Shown here: positions 155 to 60,170 of the stretch, piece by piece
Numbering within the stretch: the first letter of the stretch is position 1
How the letters are laid out: each line of letters starts with the position of its first letter
Source of the DNA: Girardia tigrina
Lineage: Eukaryota
DNA length: 60,866 nt
Assembly: GCA_001938485.1 (NCBI GenBank)
Contig: MQRK01223612.1
Coordinates: 1 to 60,866, forward strand
Reading direction: 5' to 3'
Translations under genes and position numbers: made by a program
The notes under the pieces: model-generated
The model's database searches: none
The model's input: the letters and a program-made list of their open reading frames with translations, nothing else
Told to the model about the DNA's origin: nothing

Positions 155-3100
155 TTATTTTTTGCTGGATATAATGCGCCGCTTCTCATTTTTCAAATCA
201 TCAAAATTTGATATAAAATTTTGGCTTGATGTAATTTTTAAAATTGATGCTAAATGTTCTTCAGTCAATCTAGTTCGCTGTGTAGTTTTATTCATCTTCA
301 TTTGTGAAAAAAGCTGTTCACAAATATATGTGCTACCAAACATGGATAATATGCGAATAACAAAATGTCGAATTCTTGGAAAACGATCTGCGGGTAAGTA
401 TCCGTAAAATTCTGGAATACCAATTTCCTTATATTTTTGGTTCAATAAAGTGTCGCATCGTAGTTCTATAAATTCCATTTGCAAATTTTCATCAATATTT
501 TCAATGTCAACAGATATCGAATAGCAAAAAAAATTTAAATGAGACTCGCTACTTTGAAAATTCGAAAACCTCTTTTCAAAATCTTCTTCCAACATCTTTA
601 ATTGTTTCTCAAATTTGTCAAATTTTAATTCTGGATGTTCAAGCAAGAGTCTTACAACTTGAAAAATTAGATAAATTTTCTTTTTTTATTTGTATTTGCC
701 ACAGGGATATCTTTTGCTTGAATGTATTTATTTGGTTATACAATGAAGTTATGAGCAAGTTTCTACCCTGAAGATTAATATTGAGTTGACTGAGATGCCC
801 AGTAATGTCAACTGAGAAAGCCAAATCCTGTATCCAATTAACATCTTTCAGTTCAGAGCAGTCATAACCTTTAATTTCTAAAAAAAAGCACGATTTCGTA
901 CAACAGTTGTAAAAATCTTCTTAAAACTTTATGACTTGAAAGCCAACGAACTTCAGTATAATATGACAAATCTTCCTATTCAGATTCCACGTCATTCAGC
1001 AATGACATAAATTCCCAATGGTTTAATCTGCGTGCTCGAATAAAATTAACAACTTTAGCAATTGTTTTAAATACATTATCAATTTTAATTACTTTTTAGC
1101 ATAAGACTTGCTGATGGAAGTGTTGAACAGATTTATTATAATGGGTTTTGTAGAAATAAATACTCAAATTAGATAAACCAAATGTCAACAAGGGAGTATT
1201 TATTTCTACTTACAGAAAAGAAAATAGTTATTATAAAACGTATAACTATAGATAACACAATATAAGAATAAAATAAAAATAAAAATAACCGTGAGTCTTT
1301 AAAATTTTATTCATAGTCATCAAAAACATGAATCGGACATCAACGATAAATTCACAAACAAATATGCGGTAATTAATTGTAATGTTATTTTGAATTTCCA
1401 ATCAATTTCTTTATTGATTTTTATTTTAGTTTTTATAATCATTATTCTGTCCAACAAATCTGGTGGAATGTCATGAGAAGATATCAATTCTTCCGCACCT
1501 CTGAACGATTTACATAAATCTACTCTCATATAACATGACAATTATGTCAACTTTCAACAGAAATATTTTATTTCTCCAATTTTTTGGCTGCTTTATAGTG
1601 TTATTATGTCAGATAAAACTTGATTACATGATATTTGATTATAAACCTCTGATTAAAGATTTAATTTTTGTAATTGAAAAATAAAAAAAACAGTTAATAG
1701 AACAACTAAATCCCATAATATTAATGACATTTATTGAATAAATAACTGAAGCGACATAGTTCAATCTAGAAACCTTCTAGTTCTTTTGTAATATANNNNN
1801 NNNNNNNNNNNNNNNNNNNNNNNNNNNNNNNNNNNNNNNNNNNNNNNNNNNNNNNNNNNNNNNNNNNNNNNNNNNNNNNNNNNNNNNNNNNNNNCCGCAA
1901 TTCACATTTAAATCAGTTAGATAGCTTTTTCAGTTTTTCTTCGATATCTTCCAACGATAAAATATTCCAAACATAACAACAAGCGAGCACAAACACACAC
2001 ACTTGACCAAATAAAAATGGTATCAAAAATATACAGAACAAGTACAGACAATTCAGGAAGGAAACTGGTGAGAGAAATTCACACTACGGGTTTTAACATA
2101 AGCTTTTAGTCTACCAACGACACCACGTGTAACTCCAGTCATATAAGGGGCCCCATCAGTTGCCAAAGATACTAAGCTATTCATTGGAAGATTATATTTT
2201 TTAATAGTAATCATAAGTGCATCGAAAATATCATCTCCAGTTGTTGTACCATGCATTGGAATTACTTCTAATAGCTCTTCAGTTATTGTCATATTCCGAT
2301 CACATCCTCGAATAAAAACGGCTAAATGTGCTATATCTGTTAAATCAGTACTCTCATCGATTGCAATTGAAAACACTTCAAAATTTACCAACTGAGCGAA
2401 GTTGGTCTCTTAAATTTGAAGCAATGTCAGTGATTCTATTCGCAACTGTATTTCGGGATAAAGTAATGCTTTTAAATTTATTTATCATATGGGGGCATAA
2501 CTCTTCAGCTGCTATTATTAAACATTCACTGATGAAATCGCCTTCCATAAATGATTTTGATTTTTTTGCAATTGCATGCCATAACCGATAACTAGCTGTT
2601 ACGGCGGCCACATTTTCTGCAACTGGTTTAGTGAAAATGCTTTGTTGTTTACGAAGAACTGCATTTAATTCGATCAACTTTTCCTCACGCATTTTTCCAA
2701 CGAAATTTTTATATTCTTCATTATGGAAGGTATTGTGATGCCTTTGGATATTATATTCCTTGCACACTAAAATAGTTTGTTAACATATCAAGCAGAAAAT
2801 TTTACCTTTTTCTTGAATGAAAAAATATTTAATTTCCCATTTTTCTTGAAAGCAACGATGTTCACTTTCAATCGATCGTTTTTTACTCGTACTTGGCTTC
2901 ANNNNNNNNNNNNNNNNNNNNNNNNNNNNNNNNNNNNNNNNNNNNNNNNNNCCGATAACTAGCTGTTACGGCGGCCACATTTTCTGCAACTGGTTTAGTG
3001 AAAATGCTTTGTTGTTTACGAAGAACTGCTTTTAATTCGATCAACTTTTCCTCACGCATTTTTCCAACGAAATTTTTATATTCTTCATTATGGAAGGTAT

Positions 3101-3269
3101 TGTAATGCCTTTGGATATTATATTTCTTGCACACCAAAATAGTTTGTTGACATATCAAGCAGAAAATTTTACCTTTTTCTTGAATGAAAAAATATTTAAT
3201 TTTCCATTTTTCTTGAAAGCAACGATGTTCACTTTCAATCGATCGTTTTTTACTCGTACTTGGCTTCAT
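155..3269 (-). pseudogene. hAT transposase, frameshifted and interrupted
   Basis: ORF pieces include an N-terminal Zn finger (CLICQQ..NIQRHY..H), FSIAIDESTD, LATDGAP, HQQVLC, and the C-terminal dimerisation motif SMFGSTYICEQLFS. Confidence 0.92.
1121..2055. mobile_element. TG..CA insertion (solo-LTR-like) in the hAT transposase
   Basis: It starts TGTTGAAC and ends ACAATTCA, with GGAAG on both sides (1116-1120, 2056-2060). Transposase homology stops and resumes near these points. It contains an N gap. Confidence 0.6.
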
Positions 3270-5643: not shown

Positions 5644-5793
5644 TGTCACGACCCTTTTGTTCATAACGGTTTTAAGTGCTCAAAGCCCCCAGTGGCTATT
5701 AGGGGTCAGCCACAACTCGATTTCAACTTATACTATTTTACAAACTGTTTTAATACTTATTTAATTACTAAGTTCATTTGTGGGTCGGACGCC
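5644..5793 (+). ncRNA. Family-A structured domain, partial (hairpin and pseudoknot)
   Basis: GTGGCT/AGCCAC is crossed with GGGT/ACTC at 5692-5718. Homology is lost after GGGTCGGACGCC. Confidence 0.6.
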
Positions 5794-8202
5794 TACACGA
5801 CTACACGACAATTAAATTAATAAAATTAGTAAACCAAACAAATAAATTATCTGTCACTAATATAAACTTTCAAATTCATTTCAAAACTTTCAAAAAAAAA
5901 TTTTTTTAAATCCAATTTCAAAATTCGTAACCCTAAATTTATTAAAAATTTCATAATAACATCGTCATTCCGAAGTAGGAATTTTTCAGCAGTATTATGT
6001 AAAAAAATTAATTAAACATCGAAATTTAAATAACGGAATTTGCAATAAATTTTCAAGCGTTCAAATTCTTAACAAAACTTTTGTTTAGTAAATTATAAAC
6101 TTCGCGTGAATAAAATTATCAAAGAATTGTAATTGAAATTATCGAAATCATCATACAATTCGAATTGCTTAATTTAATTTTAAAATTATATAGGCCCTAA
6201 TAATTAATTACGGAAAGGTCAAAACACCCTTAATAATATTCAAATCAGATAAAAATTACTGTTATTATTATTGTCGAAATTAAAGGTGAGAAAGTAAAAA
6301 AAAAATTTCAAAATTTATTTGTTTGAATAATCTCATTTCGACCTTTAATTCGCGGTATGAAATCAAACCTCCTCAAAAGTCATAATTATCAATCGAATTA
6401 TATCGCAATGATCGTCTTTCAAAGTTAACAAGAACGTTCACAGTTCCTAACTAGGGCCGGTAACTCTTACTATTTAATTTTCCTTTCGATAAATCTCGTT
6501 TTTTCATATCTAAGCTTTATATCTCTGTTTTATAAAATCCCATTACTATTTATTCACGAGTATAATAATAGTCCCTGTCTCTTACTATAACAAAACTATT
6601 CACAAAAGATAAACGTCAAAGGCCAATAAAATTAGAAATATAAAAAAATTTATTAAATTATTGATAAATGGTTAATATCTCGCAAACGGGGTAATCGTTA
6701 TTTCGATAATACAGGAATTGCTAGATCGCCCGTTGTGTGTGAATTGGCGGCTCCATTTCGTCGAGGAACGATATAACGCGCTCGCCCCCGATGAACGCCT
6801 CGAGAGAAATCAACACCACGTCGATAATCATTGGGACCAGGAGGCCCCCTTCACACTCTCGCGGCTCCGGCAATTGCAAATCGAGTTGGGGCATTTACGG
6901 CGAGGATTGATGGCGGTGGTGATGGTGCTAATTAATTACTTGTACGAAAAAGGTAATCTATTTCTGTAGTCGTGCGATTAATATTTAAGTAAAAATTCAT
7001 AAAAACACAAATCATAAATAAAATTCATATTAAGTCAGTAAATAGATACATAAATTAAAATTTACAGCTTTAACAAGAATTTCGGGTTTCGGAAACTCGG
7101 ATTCGGAGGAATGTCGTCGGTTTCTCTTCGCGTATCGTCGTGTAGAGGGAGTTCTCTTGACGCTTGGTTAAGTCGGAATCGGATGATCGTCCTGGCGCCG
7201 GAAGCTATCAGATTCTCGTCTCTTCGTCAAATGGGTCGTTCGTCGGTTATCTGTCGTCGCTCTGCGTCGGGTTCTGATATTCGTTTGGTTTTGGAATGAA
7301 TAACGCTCAGTAATAAGTTGTGCAAAATATTTTTGAAAAATGTGCCATTTGCGGCAGTATGGCTGTTGGATTTATAACAGTCATCATCTCACCTATCGGG
7401 GTGTGCTTTGTCGTGGCATCTTCTGATTCGCTCTTGTTAATAATTTCGGGCTCTCATTTGTCAGGACTGTCGTACCATACAGTGACTGCTTGTCACGCGG
7501 TTCTTTGTCACCGATGACTATTCATCGCGTGATGTTGTTTTTTCTTTGTGGGCCTGACTCATGGTAAGTTTTGTTTATTGTTCTTTGTCTTTCTTAATTG
7601 GCCTTTGTCCTTTTTCAATTAATTTATATATCTTTACAGGGGTATAACTTTTCAGGGGAATATCTCACAGCTTTGCCGATTTCGTTCAGGACCTTGTCAT
7701 TTTCGGGGCTACAAGTGGAGGGTCCGTTAACCTCGTAGTGTTAACGGATTGCCTTGGAAGTAACTTTATTAATTCTTGACCTCTTTTTAATTAATTAATT
7801 TTCTTTTTAAAGCTCTTAGTGCTTTTCTCAATCTTCCGGAGCACGACCATTTATTCTCAGGGATGTGTCTCACTCCACTCTACTTGGAGTGAACCATTTG
7901 TTCGTTTTCTCTTATCAGGTATGTTTTTAACCCGTTTATTTACTTTCTTGACTGATTGTTTTTAGTCCTATCTCGGCGTACAACATTCCTCTGGGCGATC
8001 GGGAGTATCTCAAACTTAATTTGTAATATTATGGTTTCTAAATATATGTATTATTCTTGTGATTTTCGCTTTTTCTCTCTTTGTTAATTGTTTTATAGTT
8101 GATAGTTGATATTGGACCGTAGTGTTATAATTAAATAGTGTTCTTTCTTTTATTTTCTCTTCTTATTTTTATAATTCTAATTTCAATTTCTAGACCGCAA
8201 CA
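5644..8202 (+). mobile_element. Family-A element (TGTCACG..GACCGCAACA), nested
   Basis: TSD CATT (5640-5643, 8203-8206). Both ends and the spliced 3' part are homologous to 20056-22875. Confidence 0.85.
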
Positions 8203-9669: not shown

Positions 9670-10050
9670 TGTCGTGTTCCCCTTCAAAACAACATTATTG
9701 ATGACTCTGAGCCCCCATCCGTTTTCCATTAGAGTTCAACGGCAACTCTATCAAACTAAGCTAATTACATCTCAACGGGAACAGACACGACTCCTTTGCC
9801 TACATCAACGAATTGTGCAGACATTAGAGCGCCTTCGGGTCCTTAACCAGTAACGAGGATGGCCCGACTGGTGACTGAGCTTCTAGAGGGGATGATAATA
9901 ATTCTATACTACGACTATAACCATACCAACGCACTAATACTCGAAACTACAGGAAACGAAGAGAGCCTCAAGAAAGAAAATGACGATCGGTCCGCGTGTC
10001 CCTTGCATGCTGCAGCCGGTCGGCATCACCCTCCCAGGTTCTTCGCCCCA
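9670..10050 (+). ncRNA. Family-A structured domain, full
   Basis: Pseudoknot CCGTT/AACGG plus AGAGTT/AACTCT (9719-9749), GCC-TTCG-GGT (9831-9840), stem ACCAGT/ACTGGT, GGGGATGAT, and a long stem at 9985-10021. Confidence 0.7.
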
Positions 10051-10841: not shown

Positions 10842-11336
10842 TCAATTCATATTTTCATAGCAAGTTGATGGCAACGAATTCGATTCGGGAACAAAATGAA
10901 CGTCTAATTCACTATTACTTAAATATGTTATTGGGTTTGTGTTTTGTGGATTGATTAAAGGTGTTTGTTCAGTGTTGTTAGTCTGTGAAACTGGAGAAAT
11001 ACTATCAACACTGTCTGAGTCATCATCACGACCGGGAATTTTAATTTTATTCTTACAAATCGGACAATTTCGTTTTTGTTTCAGCAACCAAGGATCGGTA
11101 CAAGAAGAATGGTACGCGTGGTTGCAGGGCAATATCCTTAATTTATCTCCCTCTTTAAAGTCATCAAGACAAATCGTACAAGTTTCAAAAGGGTCTTGGC
11201 CTTTTACAAATTTTTTTTTCATATTAAAGAATTTATTTAGATGATCGAAATATAACATAAAGTCCATTATAATATATCGGCATTGAGCAGTAATAATAAG
11301 ACAAAAACACAAAAAAAGAATAAAACTCAGTATCAA
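10842..11336 (-). CDS. TM plus RING-H2 E3 ligase, RNF13/RNF167 (Godzilla)-like, intronless, no PA domain; start codon uncertain, possibly a pseudogene
   Basis: CTICLDDFKEGDKLRILPCNHAYHSSCTDPWLLKQKRNCPICK has all eight ligands and follows a hydrophobic helix. An acidic/Ser-rich tail contains TEQTPLI. Confidence 0.85.
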   Translation of the reverse strand: MILSFILFLCFCLIITAQCRYIIMDFMLYFDHLNKFFNMKKKFVKGQDPFETCTICLDDFKEGDKLRILPCNHAYHSSCTDPWLLKQKRNCPICKNKIKIPGRDDDSDSVDSISPVSQTNNTEQTPLINPQNTNPITYLSNSELDVHFVPESNSLPSTCYENMN

Positions 11337-12029
11337 AGCACAAGCAAATAACCGAATAAAAAAATAAAAATTAATTAAAACATGAATACATACTTCATAA
11401 CAATAGATTTTCTCTGACTCAGCTAATAGGTTTTCTTTGACTCGGCTCTTCCTAACAATAGATTCTCTCTGTATCGGTTTTGTTCAATTAATAACCAAGA
11501 TTTGAGGAATAATGAAAATTCAACAAATTTTCTCTCTAACAAAAAAAAAATTGCGTGCGGCCTTATATACTTCCATCCGAATCGTTCAAATGTTCACGCA
11601 GGATGTGCGTGATCAACAGGATCATGAGGTAATTTTTTTGTTTTGTCATTCACATATTTATTAAATTCACGCAAGATATTCGTGAATAAACCATCTGGAA
11701 TGTCGACTAGAATTCCAAATGTCAGATGTAAGTACATATTAATTAATTCATATTTTTAATTATCTTTAATTTTCTAGCTTGGCCCCAAGCAGCGAATTGG
11801 AATCCCGACCCGATTCGACGCCCCGACAAGCTGAGAGTCATTTAACACTACATGAGGATAGTCTAGTTTGACTATCCTCAAACACTCTGAACACGGGCTC
11901 TCATGCGTAAGGGGTGTCGGGTTTGGGACAGGGTTTATATGCAGCTACCTCAGGAAAATGAAAGGGTTTGTGTAATTATATCTCTGTCGTAACAACGAGT
12001 TAAACCTAATTACAAGCAATAATCGAGTA

Positions 12030-12420
12030 TCCGGACGAAGGGTTTTGAGAAGCGGTGCGGCAGCCCATAGCATGCACAGAGGCACGTGGGCTGACCATCA
12101 CTTGTTTCTTCGAAGTGTCCTCGCCAGATATAAATAAATAAAATCGACCTTGACGAAATCGAAGAAAATAAAATCAAAAATCATCCCCTCCAGAAACTGA
12201 GTTACCAGTCGGGTCATCCTCGTTACTGGTCAAGAACCCAAAGGTGCTCTAATGTTTACACAACTTGTTGATGTAAGCAAAGGAGGCGCGTCTGCTCCCC
12301 AAGTGTAGTGAGTATCTATGTAGAGAAATAGTGATTGTTAGAATGATTGCCGTTGAACTCTAAGAAAACGAATGGTGGCTCAGAGCCATCATTAATGTTG
12401 TTTTGAAGGGGAGCACGACA
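12030..12420 (-). ncRNA. Family-A structured domain, full
   Basis: Reverse-complement homolog of 9670-10050 with all blocks in the same order. Confidence 0.7.
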
Positions 12421-13747: not shown

Positions 13748-14268
13748 TCTTTATCTTATAAAAGCCCAAGTCACTCACTGCCTGCCTCACTGCCTCACTA
13801 ACGCTGTAAGGTAAATTTTTGAAATGATTTTATAATCAATAAAGAAATGATTGTATATTAATTGTATATTATATATTGTATATTTTTTATTTTTTATTTT
13901 TTTTTATTTTTTTTTATAAAAGCCTAAGTCACTCACTGCCTGCCTCACTGTCTCACTAACGCTGTAAGGTAAATTTTTGAAATGATTTTATAATCAATAA
14001 AGAAATGATTGTATATTAATAAATAAATATTAGACTGATATTAGAATGAATGCGATTTTTGTAACCGTAATTTCTTAAATATCATTTTGTCTCGAGATAT
14101 GATTTTCAAACTTTGCATTATTAAACAGAAATAAAAACTTTTGTTATACGATTTTTTATACTCGAAACACTGAAATTTTCAATAAAAATGCTTTCAGAAA
14201 AAAGTCGCGTGATCTAATAACATGAACCCCCAGCAAGAGAGGGCCGCGAAGCGGGCCGAGCGCGCTAG
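13748..14268 (+). mobile_element. Non-autonomous Helitron
   Basis: A|TCTTTATCTTATAAAAG 5' end, GC-rich hairpin GGCCGCGAAGCGGGCC, then CTAG|T 3' end. Contains an internal duplication of about 155 bp (13756-13862 vs 13914-14020). Confidence 0.85.
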
Positions 14269-14934
14269 TTAATAAATATAAGTCATAAGTAAGAGTAAAT
14301 CAACATGGGCATAGTGAAACCAAATTGTTATTGATGTAAGTTACCATTGCGAATTAAATAAAATAAAACAGTAAAGTATAGAATGGCATTTATATAGTAG
14401 GAATCGTCAATTAACCTTATGAATTCGCAAAATGACGTCGAATACGAAATCGAACGTGAATATTCAAGTATCACTCTAAAAATCATTTCGTCCAAAATTG
14501 TTAGTAAATTTGATTGTTAAAAAATTATTTGAATAAAACATGATCAAGATAAAATGCAGTATTGATACTAGTTTTGTGAACAAATAGCGTCGTCATATAA
14601 AGTAATTGTCATTCTTACGAGGTAGAACAATAAAAGCGAAATGAAATTAATTACTGGAATAATGACATTAATAGAATTAAAAATAAGTCATGACAAAATA
14701 AAAATTAAGTGGAGTGAAAAAAAATAAATTTTTTTCTGTAAAGGTATAATGAATTCTTTAAAGAGTAGTATGGAGATCCGAAGTCAATGATCCGAGAAAC
14801 CTTTTAGCAATGACGAAGGTCATTCCAAACCACCGCCATTCATTTTTGAAGGCTCTCCTCGGTATATAGACTGCACAGCAAAGTTTACCAGTTGGACTCA
14901 AATGTATATATATATGACGAAATAAATTTATAAA

Positions 14935-15100
14935 CATACCCCGTGGATGCTGAGACCACTAGTCGGGCAATACCCGTTACTGGGTAGGACCCGTAGGCGC
15001 TCCGAAACCTACACTACCAGTTAGATGAGCGTGAAAGAGGAGCGTCCGCTCACCTTGCAGAAGTAAAAGTATAGAGTAATAGCGGGTTTCAGTTCCCCGT
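14935..15100 (-). ncRNA. Family-A structured domain, partial
   Basis: The minus strand has a GGTGAGC..GCTCATC stem, GCC-TACG-GGT and CGGGT-ATT-GCCCG. It appears truncated within the pseudoknot. Confidence 0.6.
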
Positions 15101-15651
15101 AATTTTCGAGCACAATTTCAATTGCTATTTTCCTGGTATAATTTATTTTGCAACTATCCGAAGTACGATTTAGAATCAATCCTGAAACCATTATTGGCGT
15201 ACCTTTTATTGACAATCAAGGTAAATTATATGTGGTCATGAATTCTATTTTATTTTTTTTAATTATTTGTAATGTTATATACTGATTAATATAGTTCATT
15301 TAATCTGATTTAGTCTCACTTAATTTTATTCTTATTTAACACTTATTATTAGCAATGAATTCTATTTTATTTTTTTATTATTTGTAATGTTATATAACGA
15401 TTAATATAGTTTATTTATTCTCATTTAATCTTATTCTTACTTAATATTTATTATTGACAATGAATTTTACGTAATAAAAATGAAGGTTACGACGAACAAC
15501 CATTACCAAAATGAAAATTGTAAATCACTTAAGAAGCCCATGATCGTCACACGTTTGTTAGTTGCCAAAGGAGTCGCTGTGAGGATGGATGGGAGTAATC
15601 CTGATCTCCTGGTTGAGAGAGAACTCATGGATACGAGTCTTGACTGAGGGG

Positions 15652-16029: not shown

Positions 16030-16689
16030 GCAATCTTCACTATTATTAAAACTTCTTAGCAACGTTCATTTAGTCTATGTATATTTATGTATATAATTAT
16101 TCTTTTATTATTCCAATTAATCATTTCATTTAATTAACTGCTTTAACTGCTTTTTTTAACCATTTCGTCTCGTTCATTAACCGGTGTAATTAAGTCTCAT
16201 TTTTAGTGTCACCAATATAATATTTTGTTAATGATCTTTCTTAATATATGTAAGTCAAACTTCGTGTTCCAACTTTCATATGTACAAATCGGTGGTTTGT
16301 TCGAAGCGGTTTAGACCAAACTTATCCCTACTATTACAATAATTAACCATTCCGACGTTAAAGCCGCATTGAGGAGATCACGGATAAAAAAATGATAAAA
16401 CGACACATACCAAAATCGGAAAAATAAAATGATGTGAATCTAAAATCAGAAATGCATAAAATAATGTGAACCTAAACTCAGATCGAAAGAGACGAGAATG
16501 ATGAGGTCGATGGGGATATGAATTTTTACGGGAGCAGAAGTCGCTCAACTAATGAGAACATAAGTTCGAATGAACTCGCACAAAGTCATTGTGTGTAACT
16601 ATACCAATAGATTGGCTAATAAGAGATGTATTTATATAACGTCGTGAGAGAGATAAAAGATTCAAATATTAAAGAATATGGGTGACTAG

Positions 16690-17073
16690 GACGAAGAACC
16701 TTCTGGAGGTGACGCAGGCCGACTGTAGCATGCAATGGGCACGCGGTCGACCGGCGTTGTTTCCTGACGTCTCTCTCCGTCCGATTTAATTGATAAACTA
16801 ACACAACAAAATACTTAGTTATAGGGTGAAACAATATCAACCCATTTGGACATTGAGACTACCAGTCGGGCCATACCTGTTACTAATTCGAACCCGAAGG
16901 CGCTCCGAAGCACACACAACTTGTTGATGTGCGCGGAAGAGACGCGTCTATTCCCTCAAACAGTGAATAATTATCGAAAGGAATAAGTAGTGCATAAGAG
17001 TTGCCGTTGAATTCTACAAACGGATGGGGGCTCTAAGCTAACAAAAATGTTGCCGAGAGGAGGGAAGACGACA
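16690..17073 (-). ncRNA. Family-A structured domain, full; far end of the element not found
   Basis: TGTCGTC terminus at 17073, followed by the pseudoknot, GCC-TTCG-GGT and the long stem GGTCGAC..GTCGGCC. Confidence 0.7.
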
Positions 17074-20055: not shown

Positions 20056-20310
20056 TGTCACGACTCTCTTGAGTTAGAACATTTTTAAAAGCTCTTGAGC
20101 CCCCAGTGGTTATAAAGGGTCAACCACAACCCAATGTCGCTTTATGAGTTCATTTATTTATTCCCTTGAATGTGTTTGCACCTAAATGGGTCGGATGCCT
20201 CTTCTCACCTGACATCTGACTAGTAGTGCCAAGCTCGAAGGGCCTGCGGGTTCAGTTTAAAGATAGGACGGGCTGTGGGCCCCTCTGTCTCGTGTTGCTC
20301 GGGGATGATT
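20056..20310 (+). ncRNA. Family-A structured domain
   Basis: GTGGTT/AACCAC plus GGGT/ACCC (20106-20132), GCC-TGCG-GGT (20242-20251), AGATAG/CTGTCT enclosing GGGC/GCCC, and GGGGATGAT. Confidence 0.7.
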
Positions 20311-21664
20311 TCGTGCTAGGTAACATTTATATTCTTAGTGAATGCGTCTCATGCTGGTTATAACTACTGTGTTGTATGTGCCATCTGTAACATTTACTGT
20401 GGGTGCCGCTCATGCCACGTTTGTCGGTGTGTCTAAAACTATGGAGATATCGTCATTAATATTATTAATATTATTATCATTGTATACATAACAGTCTGCG
20501 CATCAACAACTAGTATCAACGACGGGTTTACGGTATTCACTTTACACCTCATTTACTAATTATTATAATATCATTATTGTATGTTGCTATGTAACCGCAT
20601 ATTGTCATTTTATTCTTATTAATTCTAAGAGTAATCATTTGTACACTTTCTATCGACAACAAATAACGCGTTTATATTTACGAAAAGACTTTTTGCTTTA
20701 TTTATATATTATTTATATATACATAAAATCACTCCTCTAATCACAATATTCAGTGTTCGATGTTGTGCGGATTTATTTACTCAGAACGGATTTTCATATT
20801 TCAGTTTGTTTAATACCAGGTAGAATCATACCAATATAATAATTCATCATACTATTAACCTATCTAATATTCAAATACGAGCTCGCTAGGCTTAATTTCT
20901 AAAACTCAGTCATTTAATATTAGTAATTCTTCGTCTCAAATATCTACAACGATTCATTTATGACTGGGCTCGTTTTATTGATTGATTACTTACAACATAC
21001 AGACATATCTCGATTTCAGGTCCCTGCGGACCGATGTATCATTACCATCAGAACGAAACCATTCTCTCTCTGTAAGACTTCACTGCCACTGGAGTTACTA
21101 ATTTGAGCAACAAGTTTGTAGCGTGCTACATTTGACGATCGGATTTCTTATCTTTCTAATGGATAAACGAGGATAACAACGACGGCTGGAACGAAAATTA
21201 ACTTCCTATTAACTTCCTAAAAGAGAAATTATCACTTAAACACTCGGATTATTTACAAATAGACAATAAAAAAGTTTGTATATATATATATATATATATA
21301 TGTATACAAAAAAAATAAAAAAAATAAAAAAACAATATTTTAAAAAATTTAAATTACAGAAAGATTTTTTAATACAAAGATATTTATAAGATATATATAT
21401 TTTTTTGCGATATTTTTCGCAATTGATAAGAAAAGGAAAAATTCTATTAAATCCGAACCGGTCACAAAGAAACTGAAACTTGCCAATGAAAAAATCGATA
21501 TATATATATATTATATATATAATATATATATACCAATGTTCTCGTTGGTATTGATTCGAAAGGATTGTGTCTCAATATGGGATTATATATATAATTATAT
21601 ATATATATATATATNNNNNNNNNNNNNNNNNNNNNNNNNNNNNNNNNNNNNNNNNNNNNNNNNN

Positions 21665-21704
<40 letters not shown>

Positions 21705-22875
21705 CAGGTTAATAATTCAACATTGTTACATAAAGATAATAATTACAAGAACGATATCGATACGGCCCGGAGGATAGTTCTGTGCCAATCAGTTCCCTAC
21801 GGTTGTATATTTCACCTGTCGACATGTCAGTAAACGGAAGTGCCTATCTCGGGAATTAGGATTGCGCCCTCTTGATTAGCTCGTTGCTCGCTGCGCTCGT
21901 CTTTCGTCTCGTTGTCAGATGCTGCTAACAACTTGTCTATTTGGTTCTGTCGAATATTTCGCTCTGTCAAAATTTTGCTGATTGGCGTTCTTTTATCTGT
22001 CAGTTGTCTAGAATTTTCGAAATGATTTTTGATTGTCGTCTCTAGTCTACAAATTACCGTCATATTTATAACAACATTTCTTGTATATTGTTGTGTCTTT
22101 TCGTCGTGGAACTATTTCATTGGCGCAAATTGTTGTTTCTGGAATTTCATTTGTCGGGGTCTATACAACATGCCGATTTCTGATAGTGGTTCTGTCATTC
22201 TCAGAACACATGATCGGTATTATTCATTGATAAATCGTGCTGATTAATCGCATGATGGTTATTTTTGGATTTACGGTTGACTCACGGTAATTCTTAATTA
22301 TTTTTTCTATTTTAATTGGTTTTTCTTTATATTTCAGGGTCTTATACCTCTGCTCAGGAAGATACCAGTGTCTCGCGGGCTTCATTTAGGGACTCGGCTT
22401 GCGAAGATATTTCAGGAGAGGGTCGGATGACCTTCCATCTTTACTGTGAAGTTCGGTAAGGAATTTTATTATTTTTTGGTTTCGTTTTAATTAACTTTTT
22501 CTTTCTTAAGGCTTACAACTTTTCTCGGGGATATGTGATCTTCAGAGGTGTTATCTCTATGAACTCATCTAACGATATTCTATCTAGGGGAAAATATTCG
22601 TTCGATTTCTTTTATCAGGTGGGTTTCTATTCATCGTTTTCTATTTTCTTTATGTCGTGTTTTAGCCTTTATGATATTCTCACTGCTCGATCGGACTGCG
22701 AGGGGATCAATAACAATTCCGGACAACTTCGTTAACCTCTGCATGTAATGTGATACGGCGGTTAAATATATGTATTAAAGTAATGTCTTACTTTCTTGTC
22801 CTTCTTTGTGCTTGCTGAATGTTATGTTTGGTAACCTGCATATGTGTGTACTAAAATAGTTTTTTGACCGCAACA
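20056..22875 (+). mobile_element. Family-A element (TGTCACG..GACCGCAACA)
   Basis: TSD ATCA (20052-20055, 22876-22879). Same termini and intron positions as 5644-8202. Contains an N gap. Confidence 0.85.
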
Positions 22876-28260: not shown

Positions 28261-28749
28261 TTCAAGAACGATGATACGGTTACAACAGATAGGAAGTTTT
28301 AAAAGAAGATAATGTATGATGATGACTTAAAATTACCAAATCATTTGCTTCATTATTTTTTAACGTTTCTGAGTTTTGCATTTCAGCCGAAATTATAAAA
28401 ATATCCCAACAATAAAGAATAGTCAACTCTTTAGTAGATGTAGTATCAGACTGAGTAATATTTTGTTTTTCTAATGAATCGCAGATGCAGCGAAAATTTA
28501 TTGATGCGAAAAAATATTGATATTTATCTTAGTTAAAATAATTATTTCAGAGTATTAGTAGGATATTATAATATAACTATATAGATGATTGATATAGAAT
28601 TACGACAGAATCGTATCACAGTCGCCTCGTGTAAATAAGTTTTTCCTGTGTAAATAAGTTTGAGTCTACAGTTTAGTTCCTGAACAGAGAGCCAATGCGT
28701 TCAGAAGTTTTGAGTAAATCAATTTGAGAACTGGAATTAACCTAATTAC

Positions 28750-28990
28750 ATCATCCCCGAACGATATTGAGCCGGCTGGGCGGCACATAGCCCGTCCTGG
28801 ATTAATTGAACCTGAAGGCGAACCAAACTCTTCACTATTTATAGATGAGGAGCGAGGGAAACGTGTCCGCCCACCAAATTTGTAAAACGGACTTACACAG
28901 AGATGTCATATACTGGGTACAGGTTAAACCCTTAAAAACCTCTGGGACTCAGAGTCGACAATAATGTCAACACCTGAGGTGGCCGTGACA
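28750..28990 (-). ncRNA. Family-A structured domain; far end of the element not found
   Basis: TGTCACG terminus at 28990, GACTC-T-GAGTC, AGGTT/AACCT plus GGGT/ACCC, GCC-TTCA-GGT, and GGGGATGAT. Confidence 0.7.
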
Positions 28991-32744: not shown

Positions 32745-32957
32745 TTATCGGCTTGCGGCGTTCTTAGCCAACTCTCCAGGCAGCAGCAGTTTCACTCCCG
32801 TCTGGATCTCTGTGCTCGTGATCGTCGACTTCTTGTTGTAATGCGCCAATCGACTGGCCTTCCTTGCAATCCGCTCAAACACGTCGTTCACGAAACTGTT
32901 TATGATCGACATGGCTTTGCCAGAGATGCCAGTGTTTGGGTGCACCTGCAGCAGCAA
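32745..32957 (-). pseudogene. H2B: Histone H2B fragment
   Basis: [50 protein letters not shown]. The N-terminus is absent and the C-terminal helix is internally deleted. Confidence 0.95.
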
Positions 32958-33431
32958 GAATTCTATTATTTGTCTATTCAGAAATTCGTTTTTAATCTTT
33001 TCATGATAAATGTTTTTCTAGAATAATCCCGTGCAAAGCAATAATGATTTTTTTTAATTGTCAGTGATGGAATACGAAATATAGATGGTTATTGGTATAA
33101 TTTCTAATTCAATTCACAAAAGAAAAGTACAGAATAGATGTGAGATATATAAGTGTACATAATAATAATCATGAATTTTAATAATTACTTTTATATCATA
33201 TAAGATTATTATCAGAGAAAATATATATTTTTGTTCTACCTGGAAGAAATAAACGTTTTATGAAATTTAGGATGGGGATCATTTTGCTTATCAAAAGTAA
33301 AATTGATGCAATTATAGATTTACAATCACTATTGAACCTTAACGAAGTAAAATGAATGTATAATTAAATTTTATGACCAATGTTGAGTCTAACTTTTAGG
33401 AGATGCGTAAATAAAATAATCTATTCAACCC

Positions 33432-37177: not shown

Positions 37178-38990
37178 GGGAACGTTCGCTTATTACGTAA
37201 CACTTTAGGGGGAGGGGGTCAATGATTTTGTTACGGTTTGTTACGAGGAAGGAGGGAGGTTCGAAAGGTTGTTACATAAGAAAAAAATATTTTGCATTAT
37301 TGCTCTACATTTCATTCCGTCTTTAAAAAAGAATATCTTTCAATAAAATGCATTTTTTCAGAATATGTTAAGTTAAAACTACATCAGGATATTTAGTAGT
37401 AAAGTAGAATGTTTTTACAAATAAAAAAAATTGAGAAGTGACTGATATCAACTTTAGTGAACTAAAAATGCAAAACAATCATCTTCAGCCAAGAAACTCT
37501 TGTTCTATTGATGGTAAAAAACATGTTAAAATAGTTCCAGTTCCCTTAATCAAGGCCTTGTGAGATAATCATAAAAGACACCCGGATTCTGTTTTTTGCA
37601 CAGCTACTTACAATAACCTCTGTGAGCCTGCATTATTTTTAGGTCCTGAGGAAGTAGTAATCATTAGTCAAGACGATAAGGCAAAAGTACCGATTGGTTT
37701 ACCTGCAGCTGATTGTCAAGCGCCGTTGTTGATGAACATGGAATATCGAGTCACACTTCCTGATCATGATTGGTTTATTGCTCAACAACACAAGTTGATA
37801 CCTTCAGTTTATGCTGAATTAACGATTGATAACAACGGTTTTGGTGATCCAAATGCAGTTCAATATTCTGTTCCTACATACATGGCTGTAAGATCAGGAA
37901 AGCATTCTCATTCGACCGCATATTCGCATGCTAAAGATTTTGAACGTTTATATGACATTGATCAGTTCAAACGATTTCTTTTCGGTGAAAATAATTTACC
38001 AAAACCTGTAATGATAATTTTAGTTGATGGTGGTCCAGATGAAAATCCGCGTTATCAAAAAGTAATTGAAACAGCTATACATCATTTCATCAAACGTAGT
38101 CTTGATGCGATCTTCATACTAATGCTCCCCAATCGCAGTACATTCAATCCAGTAGAATGTCGAATGGCTCCTCTTTCAAAACAACTGTCAGGACTCATTC
38201 TTCCACATGATAATTATGGTACCCATCTTGACTCAAATGGAAAAACTATAAATAATTATTTAGAATACAAGAATTTTAAATTTGCTGAAGAAGCATTATG
38301 CGAAGTTTTCTCAAATGTCATCATTGATTCTTTCGAAACCGTTGCTGAATTTATTGATCACGATAGCTCTAAAATGGAATCAACTAATTTAATTCACAAA
38401 TCAGAATCTTGGATTGCCCAACACGTTCGATCAACTCAATACATGATACAAATTGTAAAATGTTTAGACAAGAATTGTTGTGGAACCATTCAAAGTAAAT
38501 TTCATAAAATCATTAAATCAAGATTTTTACCGGCCCCAATTCTTCTACATTATGCTCCAATGATTGAAATGGAATCGATGGATATCAACAAATTGAAATA
38601 TACTTCACTATTTCAAAGCCTTCATCTTGAATCACCAGAATCACCATATGACCAATATTGTCCTAGTGTCAATGACAAAGTTCAATCAAGAACATATAAG
38701 AAGTGCAAAATATATTTTGCATCCCTTACTTTATTAAGCAATCATAAAAAAAATCACTCCCGAGAAGTGATTTCTCCTGCTGCAAAGACTAGGAAAAACG
38801 AGTGCTACGTCAGCGTGAGAGAGAATTTATGGTCATTACGGAAGAATCACCAGGATTGGATACATGCGAATGGGTAGATATGGATGATGTGATAGTAGAT
38901 TCAACAATGAATTTCGATAAATCATCCGAGGATTCCATACCAGTTTTTGACTTAAATTAGCGTTTAAACCCTTGGGTAAATGAATAAATG
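37178..38990 (+). mobile_element. Zator DNA transposon; right TIR not found
   Basis: TTA|GGGAACGTTCGCTTATTACGTAACAC terminus (GG start, TWA target), followed by a G-rich tract and a transposase. Confidence 0.75.
37480..38987 (+). pseudogene. Zator transposase (largest open piece 37726-38877)
   Basis: SQDDKAKVPIG, LPDHDW, HKLIPSVY, VDGGPDENPRY and FNPVE.RMAPLS motifs. There is an upstream stop and a probable 3' frameshift. Confidence 0.8.
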
Positions 38991-40290: not shown

Positions 40291-41043
40291 TTAAATATTT
40301 TGAAAAGTTCCTAGACAGATTTTAAAATTCAAAAGTTTATCATCATTATCAATGACATTGTTTTGAGAGGCCTGCTTAAATAAATCTATATGTAATTGGT
40401 TGGTTTTTTCACGTATTATCAATTCACTAATACTTTCACCAGAAACCTGTTTCTTATTTATCCAAATCAATAATAATTTCTCTACCTCTTCTATTATTTG
40501 CGATCTTTGTTTTGTCAAGACATTCACGCCCTTTGCAACATTGGCTACGTTAATTAAATCCTTGTTTTTTTTAAATTGTTCTAACCGTTGATTTCATTAA
40601 ATTAAAATCTCTTGCAATATTGCTCATCTCATGTTTCTTAACAATTTCTTTCTTTTTTTCAATTGATATTTTGCGGCGTTTTGAATAAAATTTTGATGGT
40701 ACCATGAAGGGATAAGAACTATAAAATAAAACCTCATCACAAATAATATAACAAACCATTAATTAAACTATTAAGATAAACCATGCATTAAATTAATAAG
40801 ATTAACTATTACTTACAATAATTATCATAACCAGTGTTTCTTTCAATTTATATGATGTTTTTAATTAGTTTTCATTAAAATGGTTTATTTAAACACTAAA
40901 AATTTAAAATATCTACGTTTTTGTTAATCTGTATTTTGATGTTCGTAAATCGAAGCATGTTTGTAAACCGAGATAAAATTGACCAAAATTTATCGAAAAT
41001 TTTTTCTCGTAAACCGAGACGTTCGTAAACCGAGGTATCACTG
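40291..41043 (-). mobile_element. Tigger/pogo remnant (CENP-B-type HTH domains)
   Basis: TA|CAGTGATACCTCGGTTTACGAAC TIR, RRKISIEKKKEIVKKHE..KSTVRTI and EEVEKLLLIWINKKQVSGESISE. Confidence 0.9.
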
Positions 41044-42712: not shown

Positions 42713-43187
42713 TTTTAATTTTTCTTGATTAAGGATTATTGAAAAATAATTTTTTAATAGAAAAAAGAAAGGTTTTCCACTGACGACTGTTATTTATTAG
42801 AAAAAAGTTTTTTTATATAAATAATATTTATTATAAAAATTCTTTTTTTAAAATTTAAAATAAATAAATTCTTTTTATTTTAATTTATAATAAATAGATG
42901 ATTTTTTTATATTGTAACATTATCTTATTTTTTTTAAATTTAACTGTTATTTATTAGAAAATTTTTAATTTTTCTTGATTAAGGATTATTGAAAAATAAT
43001 TTTTTAATAGAAAAAAGAAAGGTTTTTCACTGACGACTGTTATTTATTAGAAAAAAGTTTTTTTTATTTAAATAATATTTATAATAAAAATTCTATTTTT
43101 AAAATTTAAAATAAATAAATTCTTTTTACTTTAATTTATAATAAATAAATGATTTTTTTTATATTGTAACATTATCTTATTTTTTTA
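42713..43187 (+). repeat. Tandem duplication, unit about 250 bp
   Basis: TTTTCTTGATTAAGGATTATTG..GTAACATTATCTTATT occurs twice. Confidence 0.9.
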
Positions 43188-43649
43188 AATGGGAAATTAT
43201 ATTCCCAAAACATTTCAAAATAAATGGGGAAAAACCCCGAAAATGTTTAACGACAAAGCCGCTTTATTTAATATAAAAAAGAATAATAATGATGGGGAAA
43301 ACCCCGAGTCACCCCGAAAAACGGTGACTTCAAATAAATTAACTCACTCTCCGGATAAAAATATTTTTTTCCTTTTATAAAAAAAAAATTTTTTATCGGG
43401 TAATGCGCCTTTGTCGGCGCACCCCGAGTCACCCCGATGCGGTGACAATTTTCGACTTAATTATCTCCTCTCTAAACTAATGTGGAAAACTTTGTTAGCA
43501 TGATCAAGGAATTTATTATATAAAGAAAAATATTTCCAGAAAAAGGACATTTATTTTTTTGTAACAATAAATGTAAGTCGGTTTTTTTTATATTTTTATT
43601 TTAAATTGTAAGTTTTTTATATACATAAATTTGATATAATTTTTTTTAT

Positions 43650-46600
43650 ATATATAAAATTTTTTTATTAATAAATAAATATATTTTTTTGAGATTTTAA
43701 CTAATAATAATAAATCCAAATAAAAAAAATAAAATAATAATATTATTTTCAATTAAATAATAATAATCATAATAATAATAATAATTCTAAATCATAATAA
43801 TAATGATAATAATAACTAAAATAAATATTAAAAATAAATAATCATAATCATAATAATAATTCTAATTAAATAATAATAATAATAAAATAAAATAATAATC
43901 ATAATCATAATATTACTATCTCAAATTAAATAATGATAACATATTTTAATGATAATAATACTACAGAATTAATAATAATATTTAAATATATACATATATA
44001 TTTATAAGTATTTTTTATTAAAATATTTATAATAATAATAATAAAAATAATAATATCTCTTTTGTTATATCCAACCGAACGACAAACTCCGGACCTGAAA
44101 TTCCGAAGTCCAAATCGAAGCCAGGGAAGATTTTTATTATGATTATTTATTTTTATTATTCTTTTTTTGTAATTATTTCATTTTATTTGACTTTGTATAT
44201 ATATAAATATATACACACATATACACGTATATATACAAATATACATATTTGAATATATTTAAAAGACTAACGGTTTTCTATATAATAATTTTTTTAAAAG
44301 ATTTTTTTTATTAGATTTAAAAATTTAATTTATATTTTTCGTAACCCCAACACTTTCATTTAAAATAATATTTTACACATTAAGTTTAATAAATAAATAA
44401 ATGATTATAATATTTTTATGAATGGTTATGAATTTATTTATGAATATTAAAATCGTTAATTTTGTTTAAAAATTTGTTAAACAAAATAATTATGGTGTTA
44501 GAAATGTATAATTTTCAGATCTAATACTATATTCTTTTAGGATTCGTAAAGCCTCGGTGGCATGGATACTTGAGTAAGAAAATCCTATTCAAATTTCATA
44601 CATTCTGGACGCTATATTCAACAAACATTAAATCCATAGGAATATCAATAATTGACGAAATTGAAAAGTAATAAAATATTTTTATATTCTTTTTTACTTT
44701 TTTGAAATAATAGGTCTTGTCAATTATTTGATATTCATCTATGTGATGGAAATACACGACTTTACTACACATGTAGTGAAGTCGCCGAAATATTCAATCG
44801 CATGAATATAAAAGACAAAACCTATGCGACATATACAAATATGATGGTTGAATCATCAGAATTCATAAAAAATGTTCTTAATAAAATAAATGATCCAGAT
44901 TTCAATATAGAGGCTCAATCATCTTTTTTGAATGGCCTTCTTTTGGACAATTGCAAAGGATTGGCAGAGACACTTCAAAAAATTAAGTTTGAATGCCGTC
45001 AAGTAAAATAAATAATATTTATTATTATGTTTAATTCGTCTTTCCTTTTTAAATAGAATATAGATTCTCAAAAGCTACACGTTACAATGGGAATTATAAA
45101 TGCGCTAAAATTATTACTATTGAATACCAAAAACAATAGTCGTACATAATGGATTTTACGACATTTTTGCTTTTTCTAATTTTTTTCTAAGAATATAAAA
45201 AAGAAAGTATAACTGAAGAATCAGATGATTTAGTGATAATTTTTAGTAATTTAGATTTAGTAATAAGAACGTATAATTTTTTTATATTTATAAAATTTTT
45301 TATTAATAAATATATTTTTTTGAGATTTTAACTAATAATAATAAATCCAAATAAAAAAAATAAAATAATAATAATATTTTCAATTAAATAATAATAATCA
45401 TAATAATAATTCTAATAATAACTAAAATAAAAAATAATTCTAATAATGATAATAATAACTAAAATAAATATTACTAAAAATAAATAATCATAATCATAAT
45501 CATAATAATAATTCTAATTAAATAATAATAATAATAAAATAATAATCATAATCATAATATTACTATCTCAAATTAAATAATGATAACATATTTTAATGAT
45601 AATAATACTACAGAATTAATAATAATATTTAAATATATACATATACATATATATAAGTATTTTTTATTAAAATATTTATAATAATAATAATAAAAATAAT
45701 AATATCTCTTTTTTTATATCCAACCGAACGACAAACTCCGGACCTGAAATTCCGAAGTCCAAATCGAAGCCAGGGAAGATTTTTATTATGATTATTTATT
45801 TTTATTATTCTTTTTTTGTAATTATTTCATTTTATTTGACTTTGTATATATATAAATATATACACACATATACACGTATATATACAAATATACATATTTG
45901 AATATATTTAAAAGACTAACGGTTTTCTATATAATAATTTTTTTAAAAGATTTTTTTTATTAGATTTAAAAATTTAATTTATATTTTTCGTAACCCCAAC
46001 ACTTTCATTTAAAATAATATTTTACACATTAAGTTTAATAAATAAATAAATGATTATAATATTTTTATGAATGGTTATGAATTTATTTATGAATATTAAA
46101 ATCGTTAATTTTGTTTAAAAATTTGTTAAACAAAATAATTATGGTGTTAGAAATGTATAATTTTCAGATCTAATACTATATTCTTTTAGGATTCGTAAAG
46201 CCTCAGTGGCATGGATACTTGAGTAAGAAAATCCTATTCAAATTTCATACATTCTGGGCGCTATATTCAACAAACAATAAATCCATAGGAATATCAATAA
46301 TTGACGAAATTGAAAAGTAATAAAATATTTTTATATTCTTTTTTACTTTTTTGAAATAATAGGTCTTGTCAATTATTTGATATTCATCTATGTGATGGAA
46401 ATACACGACTTTACTACACATGTAGTGAAGTCGCCGAAATATTCAATCGCATGAATATAAAAGACAAAACCTATGCGACATATACAAATATGATGGTTGA
46501 ATCATCAGAATTCATAAAAAATGTTCTTAATAAAATAAATGATCCAGATTTCAATATAGAGGCTCAATCATCTTTTTTGAATGGCCTTCTTTTGGACAAT

Positions 46601-48791: not shown

Positions 48792-49553
48792 GAATATATT
48801 TTATGAAGAGTAAACTTCAGAAAAATATCTGTATCGATTGCATAATTCGTGGGGCAATATAAAAGCCACTTTGGAGTTTTAATGGAACGACTTTTATATT
48901 TTTCCTTACTTAAACTTACTCTTTATAAAATTAATTAATCTATTAATTCATTTATTTTTATTGAGTTCCAGAAGGAAATTTTTGGTGAAATTTTTGTTTA
49001 AAAATACAACAAAAAATCAAATAATAAATTAATTAAATAAAAAAAATAAATAATTAATTAAGTATCTACATTGAAAAATATCTATATATGATTACACAAT
49101 CATTGATAACACAATTTGTGGAAAAAAATATAAAAGTCGTACCCCGAGGAGATTAATGGCAAAATTTAACATTCAATTTTGCATATCTTCATTTATTTTA
49201 TTCTATTTTGTTCATAATTTTAGAAAATTATTTTGGGTGTAGTTCCGTATGGGCGCCAGCGAAAATAAATGTAAAATTGGAATGTTTCGTTTGAAAGTGT
49301 CCGAAATTCAAAATATGTTTGATTACTATATATAGACTTTTTCAAATGATTTTTTTGATCTTGTTCAATGTAATAAACAGTTACAGGAACAATTTCAAAA
49401 CAACATCCAATAAATAATTTTTCGTATATAATTTTAATTTTCAATTTACGATTCTATTGCGAATCAATATCGCTAAAAGAATCATAAATTCAAATATAAA
49501 TAAATTTTAATTTTAGGTAATTTATAATATAAATATGAAAATATAAATAGATA

Positions 49554-49905
49554 CAGGGTGGCCCAATGGGTACGCAGCCTCTAATTTTTGCATATTCTAA
49601 ATCTACTCGTCAAGACGAGTATTTTGATATATAACATGTGAATAATAACATTTATAATATTATAACATTNNNNNNNNNNNNNNNNNNNNNNNNNNNNNNN
49701 NNNNNNNNNNNNNNNNNNNAGGGTGGCCCAATGGGTACGCAGCCTCTAATTTTTGCATATTCTAAATCTACTCGTCAAGACGAGTATTTTGATATATAAC
49801 ATGTGAATAATAACATTTATAATATTATAACATTTATAACATTATAGAATTATAACATTTAGAATATGCAAAAATTAGAGGCTGCGTACCCATTGGGCCA
49901 CTCTG
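49554..49905. mobile_element. Tc1/mariner MITE (left part duplicated across an N gap)
   Basis: TA|CAGGGTGGCCCAATGGGTACGCAGCCTC.. TIR of about 49 bp, ending ..GGCCACTCTG|TA. Confidence 0.9.
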
Positions 49906-52630: not shown

Positions 52631-52639
52631 ATTCCCTGA

Positions 52640-53033
52640 TACAATCCATTGCCATACAAAATTTTGGCTTTATACATATCTTAACGTTGTGACCGGATTG
52701 CAAGCAATTAAAACATAATCTCTTTTCCATAGCCACATCCCGACGCTGATCTACTGATAGTTTTTCGAATAACTCACACTGATTTATGTAATTATCTTCA
52801 TGACAAAATTGACACGCTATCCTTTTTCTTCCTGAAATCTCGTCGATCGATCCGCTGGACACACTCCTTTCAACGTAGTTCAAAAATGTATTTTTCCTCA
52901 TCGGTTCCAGCAGTGACTTCTTTAGAACCTCATCTGTCTTTTTCAAATAGTCGCTGAAATTTTCATGTTCAAGAAATTGGTTTTGCAACAAAAATCTGTT
53001 ATTTTTGTTCTTCATTCCATTTCTTTTGTCCAA
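52640..53033 (-). pseudogene. BEL/Pao gag zinc-knuckle fragment
   Basis: CQFCHEDNYINQC..LSVDQRRDVAMEKRLCFNCLQSGHNVKIC. Confidence 0.85.
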
Positions 53034-59890: not shown

Positions 59891-60170
59891 AATATTATTA
59901 ATAAAAAAAATTTTTTTATAAAAACAACCACGTTTTTCAAGCATTACCAATGCACTAAAAAGAGGAAATTAATTTTTTTTTTCTAGACATGTGCGAAATT
60001 TTATACCTAACCAAAAACGTGGGGTGGATTTCTGAATTACTGCTATTAGTAACTGCTATTTCCTCTTTACTGCTTTTTAGTAACAATCGATCATTTCTAT
60101 GCCCCACGTTTTAGGTAATGCTTGAAAAACGTGGTTGTTTTTATAAAAAAATTTTTTTATTAATAATATT
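59891..60170. repeat. Foldback/MITE-like inverted repeat
   Basis: Arms of about 57 bp at 59891-59948 and 60114-60170, plus an inner pair AAAACGTGGGG/CCCCACGTTTT. Confidence 0.85.

Follow-up and report, generated by a model that had tools for sequence, protein, structure and literature searches.

The stretch of DNA analysed here, hereafter the window, covers 60,866 nt of contig MQRK01223612.1 of Girardia tigrina (assembly GCA_001938485.1). It has a G+C content of about 29%, carries many simple AT-rich repeats and short runs of N, and contains remnants of hAT, Tc1/mariner and pogo-type transposons: a broken hAT-family transposase with Dimer_Tnp_hAT and DUF4371 matches (155–3269, minus strand), a Tc5/pogo HTH fragment (40294–40593, minus strand) and Tc1/mariner remnants with HTH_Tnp_Tc3_2 and DDE_3 matches (52282–53862, plus strand). 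An open reading frame with a CCHC gag-like knuckle is found at 52530–53042 (minus strand) and a histone H2B-like fragment at 32748–33017 (minus strand). Furthermore, a 437-codon open frame at 37564–38874 (plus strand) shows 40–61% identity to uncharacterised, partly C2H2-annotated proteins of mosquitoes, Hydra, Daphnia, leeches, rotifers, slugs and others, one of which has a PF07592 (transposase-like) match; no copy above 61% identity was found in the protein database. Several duplications are present as well. An N gap separates the two members of a 300-nt duplication with 98% identity (2585–2884 and 2952–3251), which may have arisen during assembly. At 43600–46100, long (TAA)n arrays accompany a tandem duplication of 1.65 kb, parts of which are 98% identical, and shorter units are repeated 1.9 times at 42713–43190 (251 nt) and at 13756–14060 (158 nt). 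A perfect inverted repeat of 45 nt with its arms 165 nt apart (59904–60158) and inverted and direct repeats of 48–59 nt around an N gap (49544–49915) look like small foldback or MITE-like elements.

The segment at 9780–9897 belongs to an interspersed repeat of about 385 nt, in one copy of which it forms the central and most conserved domain; the repeat unit has the ends 5'-TGTC(G/A)(T/C)G ... CTTCGYCC-3'. Copies were detected by a blastn self-search, by nhmmer (--max) and by a covariance model run with filters off, and the three gave mutually consistent results. With nhmmer seven diverged copies were found in the window, on both strands and all within 5.6–29 kb, and none elsewhere in the 60.9 kb. 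The covariance model found six and, even with filters off, no further copies in the window. The domain itself is present in six copies, at 9773–9897 and 20183–20310 on the plus strand and at 12179–12303, 14932–15057, 16835–16959 and 28749–28878 on the minus strand. Pairwise identity between copies ranges from 64 to 87%, and their G+C content of 44–48% clearly exceeds that of the surrounding DNA (about 29–30%). An isolated G+C-rich island in AT-rich DNA at 14212–14270 (minus strand, CTCGGCCCGCTTCGCGGCCCTC) gave a marginal nhmmer match without being a copy of the repeat.

The copy containing 9780–9897, as delimited by the blastn and nhmmer self-searches and the alignments, is a full one of 380 nt (9670–10049, plus strand; TGTCGTG...CTTCGCCCC). 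It and the copy at 12033–12420 (minus strand) are each other's closest relatives, with 87% identity over the first conserved block, and are inverted with respect to each other with their TGTC ends pointing outward. A second full copy, of 385 nt, lies at 16689–17073 (minus strand). In the copy at 14790–15127 (minus strand) the TGTC end is degenerate and the second block shortened, hence its ends are approximate. Two copies belong to a TGTCACG subfamily (20056–20312, plus strand, and 28749–28990, minus strand), and the seventh, at 5644–5803 (plus strand), is truncated, consisting of only the first 150–160 nt from the TGTC end, without the domain of 9780–9897. In the three long copies the distance from TGTC to CTTCGYCC is 379, 388 and 385 nt and so stays constant despite variable linkers. 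The first conserved block ends with GGGGATGA (9888–9895), the second most conserved stretch, as quoted in the original prediction. The second conserved block (9957–10045), recognised in the three long copies, is closed by CGAAGAG/TCTTCG and includes the palindrome TGCATGC (10004–10010). The linker between the blocks is far more diverged than the blocks themselves in the 87%-identical pair.

The 5' part is intact in six copies, the truncated one included, and all of these begin at the same TGTC(G/A)(T/C)G. In the 130 nt upstream of TGTC no similarity was detected among these six, not even within the 87%-identical pair, nor was an upstream promoter-like motif common to them. Only the copies at 5644 and 17073 have about 10 nt (AAYTTCATT) in common beyond TGTC. 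The common TGTC start, the unrelated flanks and one copy cut at about 155 nt argue for the insertion of a defined unit and against segmental duplication of a locus. Judged by these alignments, the 118 bases at 9780–9897 are a domain of a dispersed repeat and not a free-standing RNA gene.

Two kinds of sequence accompany the copies. Paralogous blocks of about 700 nt, approximately 61% identical to each other, lie at 7359–8068 and 22053–22792 (both plus strand), each 1.6–1.9 kb downstream of a copy of the repeat (5644 and 20056, respectively) and in the same orientation. They carry short AT-rich GT...AG intron-like inserts, and tblastx detected no coding conservation between them. Exactly between the inverted copies at 9670–10049 and 12033–12420 lies a 213-codon open frame (10845–11483, minus strand) with a transmembrane segment, a RING-H2 finger and the tail of an RNF13/goliath-like E3 ligase. 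Its best named relative is from Macrostomum (47% identity). A PA-domain exon belonging to it was not found in the window.

One alternative to mobile insertions would be a local paralogous family of genes for a structured, possibly catalytic non-coding RNA, with a multibranch domain on the TGTC strand that has a UNCG hairpin at the tip of one arm. The clustering of all seven copies in 5.6–29 kb would suit such genes, as would an identity of 71% between the copies at 5644 and 20056, against only 61% between the paralogous blocks beside them. This is opposed by flanks which are unrelated up to the first base of the unit in six copies, by the absence of a common promoter motif from them and by the copy that is cut to about 155 nt. 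Together with the structural evidence given below, we regard this explanation as unlikely.

What class of element could have inserted? In this 61-kb window the repeat has what is expected of a SINE with respect to dispersed copies, a defined end and unrelated flanks. Searches for target-site duplications of 2–10 bp were negative, both at single units and at the outer flanks of the inverted pair (9670/12420), and the longest words common to both flanks were no longer than those in shuffled flanks. No A-rich or simple-repeat tail is common to the copies. A and B boxes or a tRNA, 5S or 7SL head were not found by Rfam at E<=10 on four copies or by ARAGORN, and what could be seen of boxes by eye was not convincing. 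The repeat therefore does not fit a SINE of the polymerase III type, which would be expected to have head, boxes, target-site duplication and 3' tail. Moreover, T4–T5 runs occur in the loop of an upstream hairpin (Hb, see below) of three copies on the TGTC strand, where they would stop polymerase III. Other classes did not fit either. A solo LTR would agree with the TG start, but a conserved CA end (the far ends read CCCCA, CCTA and CCGGA), inverted termini and a 4–6-bp duplication are lacking. A MITE or other DNA transposon with terminal inverted repeats is contradicted by the absence of such a repeat within the unit and of a duplication: the reverse complement of the first 8–12 nt has no match at the unit's far end. 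The one candidate, CACGACA, is a match of only 6–7 nt, occurs 29 times in the window, and the similarity between copies continues past it. A Helitron would have 5'-TC and 3'-CTRR ends, the latter after a hairpin, and insert between A and T, whereas this unit runs from TGTC to CTTCGYCC and its flanking bases differ between copies.

In a broader sense, the repeat might still be a DNA-level element: either a transposon end, of the cut-and-paste or integrase type, or a solo LTR. Gypsy LTRs and the ends of Ginger transposons start with TGTNR, and all copies start with TGTCG or TGTCA, which fits. In this case, the copies at 9670–10049 and 12033–12420 would be the long inverted ends of a 2.75-kb element with a captured RNF13-like RING exon, and the hairpins described below would serve as dyads for protein binding or belong to a single-stranded DNA intermediate. 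The inverted pair speaks for this, as its members are mutual closest relatives (87%) with TGTC ends outward and enclose a lone open frame with transmembrane segment and RING finger, the PA-domain exon being found nowhere in the window; equal helix scores on the two strands and the lack of a strand signal from wobble pairs would also agree with it. Against this stand the other five copies, which are solitary, and the absence of a 2–10 bp target-site duplication from single units and from the inverted pair alike, of a terminal inverted repeat in the unit, of a conserved CA at its far ends, and of a direct pair around an internal region with primer-binding site or polypurine tract. We consider a DNA-level element doubtful.

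With respect to secondary structure, the original prediction described a multibranch RNA domain on the TGTC strand, capped by an extra-stable C(UNCG)G tetraloop. Conserved helices with compensatory changes are indeed present, but the C(UNCG)G arm itself has no covariation in its support. The comparative statistics were computed from six or seven related sequences, all from this window, and so have low power. The best-supported helix of the repeat, the upstream hairpin Hb (9719–9742; CCGTT, a 14-nt loop, AACGG), lies outside 9780–9897. In other copies it reads GTGGTT/AACCAC, GTGGCT/AGCCAC or AGGTT/AACCT, and 7 cells of the alignment are changed on both sides; its covariation score of 0.516 compares with 0.21±0.08 in shuffled alignments and was reached by 2 of 500 shuffles. 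Within the domain the hairpin P3 (9803–9817; CA-T-CAA, loop CGAA, TTG-TG) has 94% of its core pairs formed and is present in most single-sequence folds. Its variants are CAA/TTG versus CTA/TAG, CTG/TAG and CTAT/ATAG, the pair beside C-G being A-T in one half of the six copies and T-A in the other.

P3 includes the conserved CATC, which had been proposed to pair with the downstream GGGGATGA block. This pairing is possible in five of six copies (83% of cells paired), but none of its pairs is changed on both sides, and P3 competes for the same bases: CATC pairs with the nearby GTG at least as well as with the GATG of GGGGATGA. From the comparison of copies, the local hairpin P3 is better supported than the closing pairing.

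A bulged hairpin, P4/P5, follows at 9846–9872 (ACCAGT, AA bulge, CGAGG..CCCG, ACTGGT, with ACCAGT at 9846–9851 and ACTGGT at 9867–9872). The outer stem, predicted as ACCAGT/ACTGGT or AGATAG/CTGTCT, and the inner GGG/CCC stem were both recovered, but in place of the proposed (A/G)AC bulge, an AA bulge with an adjoining C-G pair is the better reading. In the MAFFT register its 10 pairs are formed in 80% of cells, and three are changed on both sides. In the copy at 20.2 kb, AGATAG/CTGTCT stands in place of P4; when this copy was folded singly, AGAUAGG/UCUGUCU and GGGCU/GGCCC formed in a shifted register, replacing P4 wholly. As a rough estimate, one would expect such a 6-bp replacement to match by chance with a probability of (6/16)^6 per register, which for about 10 registers gives roughly 0.03. 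P4 is broken in the copy at 28.8 kb. The second block is likewise closed by a stem, CGAAGAG/UCUUCG. Finally, the RNAalifold consensus contains a candidate long-range helix, P1/P2 (9777–9842), in which GGGAAC..ACG-A-CTCC pairs with AGAG-CGC..GGTCC and encloses P3 (consensus strands GGGAxC..GCG-x-CUCC and GGAG-CGC..GGUYC). Of its 13 pairs, formed in 83% of cells, two have both partners replaced, in each case in the 20.2-kb copy. Compensatory changes in several helices would also be expected of RNA genes. However, single-copy folds are no more stable than shuffled sequences on either strand (z +1.3 to −2.0), which speaks against genes for a structured RNA.

The original prediction centred on GCC-TTCG-GGT at 9831–9840, a proposed 3-bp C(UNCG)G hairpin within the most conserved 10-mer of the domain. 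The loop variants were quoted correctly: at homologous positions the six copies have TTCG twice and TACG, TGCG, TTTG and TTCA once each. Besides the site at 9831, these are GCC-TTCG-GGT at 16892–16900 (minus strand), GCC-TACG-GGT at 14989–14997 (minus strand) and GCC-TGCG-GGT at 20243–20251 (plus strand), and, with the UNCG motif lost, ACC-TTTG-GGT at 12236–12244 (minus strand) and GCC-TTCA-GGT at 28810–28818 (minus strand). Thus, a U-N-C-G loop with a closing C-G pair exists in four of six copies. The hexamer C-T-N-C-G-G occurs 30 times in the window where 22.5 instances are expected by chance; therefore its presence alone is unremarkable, and the real part is its conservation. The mean pairwise identity of GCCTTCGGGT is 0.84, as compared with 0.56 for the domain, and is the highest of any 10-mer therein. 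GCCUUCGGGU, the domain's top-conserved decamer (0.84 versus 0.56), has its least conserved column at loop position 2, which is the pattern a cUNCGg hairpin would give; the loop changes among the six copies (position 2 twice, positions 3 and 4 once each, position 1 never) do not suffice in number to establish a greater freedom of position 2. GGGGATGAT reaches 0.79 against the domain mean of 0.56. This uneven conservation (GCCTTCGGGT 0.84 and GGGGATGAT 0.79 versus 0.56), combined with a linker that is hypervariable even in the 87% pair, is again a feature which RNA genes would share.

The hairpin itself fared less well than the sequence. Two pairs of its stem are invariant and the third is changed on one side only (G.U to A-U), none being changed on both sides; invariant or one-sided pairs give no covariation signal. 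Furthermore, the hairpin uses the same bases as the 13-pair helix P1/P2 and the two are mutually exclusive, with RNAalifold preferring P1/P2. According to ViennaRNA its ensemble probability is 0.003 in the 9670 copy and 0.10, 0.015, 0.001 and 0.055 in four others, and rises to 0.47 only in the TTCA copy, which itself is without UNCG. The view that C(UNCG)G is the favoured local fold was thus not borne out, with a probability of at most 0.10 in five copies. A hairpin disfavoured in the ensemble is a further point against genes for an RNA capped by it, as are the disruptive changes in the proposed hairpins (TTTG, TTCA and A.C mismatches, A.C being as common as G.U). On the basis of these six copies, GCCUUCGGGU may be either a small hairpin capped by cUNCGg or one strand of a long-range helix. 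As for the two lost motifs, TTTG and TTCA are transitions at a CpG, and CpG decay had been proposed as their cause. The CpG observed/expected ratio is 1.26 in the whole window at 29% G+C and 0.92 in the copies. The window shows no CpG depletion, which is evidence against the germline cytosines of this genome being heavily methylated, and therefore CpG decay is not a demonstrated process here.

Which strand would be the RNA? The preference for the TGTC strand in the original prediction turns out to rest on one inherited G.U pair of the 3-bp hairpin, the other helices being balanced. Over P1, the two-pair joiner J, P2, P3, P4 and P5 we counted 14 G.U and 14 A.C cells; these about equal numbers carry no wobble-based strand signal and are what neutral decay of double-stranded copies gives. 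RNAalifold on both strands had been put forward as a check of the TGTC strand, and it yields slightly better scores for the opposite one in both blocks (−29.7 versus −24.9 kcal/mol for the first, −28.3 versus −23.3 kcal/mol for the second). In addition, the truncated copy keeps the TGTC end, and AAYTTCATT beyond TGTC is common to the copies at 5644 and 17073. Both hints would suit an RNA of the opposite strand whose copies share their 3' end and carry a ragged tail there, as in target-primed reverse transcription. Taken together, the sequences do not allow a choice: the RNA strand cannot be chosen from these copies.

The statement that the domain matches no ribozyme or snRNA held up in the searches. 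With Rfam 15, the whole window was free of matches at the gathering score, and a search of four copies on both strands at E<=10 returned nothing relevant (no ribozyme, snRNA, tRNA, 5S or SRP); ARAGORN detected no tRNA or tRNA-like gene. This absence of a known family would allow for a new one, also in the case of RNA genes. Degenerate-pattern scans of JGI metagenomes, IMG/VR and GTDB genomes gave no convincing copy from outside the window. The sole pattern match, in a Chloroflexota MAG, is attributed to chance, with about 0.3 such matches expected and flanks without similarity. An exact-protein look-up of two open frames of the window returned no record, and a Hydra locus had no repeats in common with the window.

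The sharp end, identical in six copies, is what one would expect if it were set by self-cleavage, and a compact multi-helix domain with invariant unpaired bases also recalls a ribozyme. The repeat might then carry a new self-cleaving ribozyme, in the manner of the hammerheads known from Penelope-like elements and retrozymes, or of the HDV-like ribozymes with which some retrotransposons begin. However, the models for hammerhead, HDV-like, twister, pistol, hatchet and other ribozymes have no match at E<=10 in four copies. An HDV-like P1, formed by the first 7 nt with a downstream ACACGAC, is possible in the 9670 copy only and was discarded, as the other copies reach at most 5 of 7 pairs by eye; such a pairing is not conserved, and nothing in the sequence points to catalysis. 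We regard a ribozyme as extremely improbable. Very unlikely, too, is the wider proposal that the unit of about 385 nt is an undescribed multi-domain RNA with a cUNCGg arm, be it a lineage-specific gene family or a catalytic or reverse transcriptase-recruiting module of a retroelement, whose TGTC end would be set by RNA processing.

Summarizing, we favour, albeit with limited confidence, the explanation that 9780–9897 is the core of dead copies of a structured, non-autonomous mobile element, most likely RNA-mediated. The copies would be dead insertions of this element, which most likely would have spread via an RNA copy, as a SINE-like retroposon lacking any polymerase III head that could be recognised. 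In the lineages of active source copies, compensatory changes would have maintained Hb, P3, P4/P5 and the stem closing the second block. In these source copies the hairpins, together with the GCCUUCGGGU and GGGGAUGA blocks, would have been selected, for instance as a handle that recruits a reverse transcriptase or because they stabilise the RNA. Once inserted, the copies would have decayed neutrally. Such an element is supported by seven copies of 64–87% identity with a sharp TGTC end, unrelated flanks, a constant unit length and higher G+C; by the compensatory changes in Hb, P4/P5, P2 and P3; by the lack of a known RNA family or tRNA-like head; and by surroundings which are rich in transposon remnants. 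The changes seen in single copies (loops TTTG and TTCA, the broken P4 and A.C as frequent as G.U) fit the neutral decay of dead copies, not maintained genes. On the other side, target-site duplication, tail, A/B boxes and a tRNA, 5S or 7SL head are missing and T4–T5 runs are present; all seven copies fall within 24 kb, leaving 37 kb without any; the two most similar copies are inverted, their TGTC ends outward; and no copies were obtained from outside the window. A LINE partner was not found in the window either. The linker, being more diverged than the blocks in the 87% pair, could also mean continuing selection.

If a mobile element of this kind is the right explanation, it adds one more unclassified interspersed repeat, the main use of which lies in annotating the repeats of this genome and in illustrating, on a modest scale, how RNA-style hairpins persist across subfamilies. 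Should the copies be confined to this locus or be transcribed as a discrete RNA, they would represent a new structured RNA family that is not in Rfam.

Among known systems, the repeat resembles SINEs and further non-autonomous retroposons with conserved stem-loops, such as those of the UnaSINE1/UnaL2 type, recognised by the reverse transcriptase of a partner LINE. Like these it is short (about 385 nt) and non-coding, with diverged copies on both strands, a G+C content above that of the surroundings, a sharp common end and unrelated flanks, and compensatory changes between subfamilies have maintained its hairpins even as single copies decay. Unlike SINEs, it has no tRNA, 5S or 7SL head, A/B boxes, tail or target-site duplications that could be found. 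With solo Gypsy LTRs and Ginger ends it has in common the TGTCG or TGTCA start, a length of a few hundred bases and solitary copies, but it lacks their YNACA end, the 4–6-bp duplication and a direct pair around an internal region. Ribozyme-bearing repeats such as Schistosoma Sm-alpha, Penelope-like elements, retrozymes and the B2 SINE also have a compact conserved RNA fold; in contrast to them, the copies here are not in tandem, show no known ribozyme core according to Rfam and give no evidence of cleavage. With regard to the tetraloop, the cUUCGg (UNCG) hairpins of rRNA and other RNAs differ from the repeat's stem of 3 bp, one of them G.U, with its low probability, its rival long-range helix and the loss of the motif in two copies. 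Still, C-U-N-C-G-G is present in four of six copies, with position 2 as the most variable one in a near-invariant block, just as in those hairpins.
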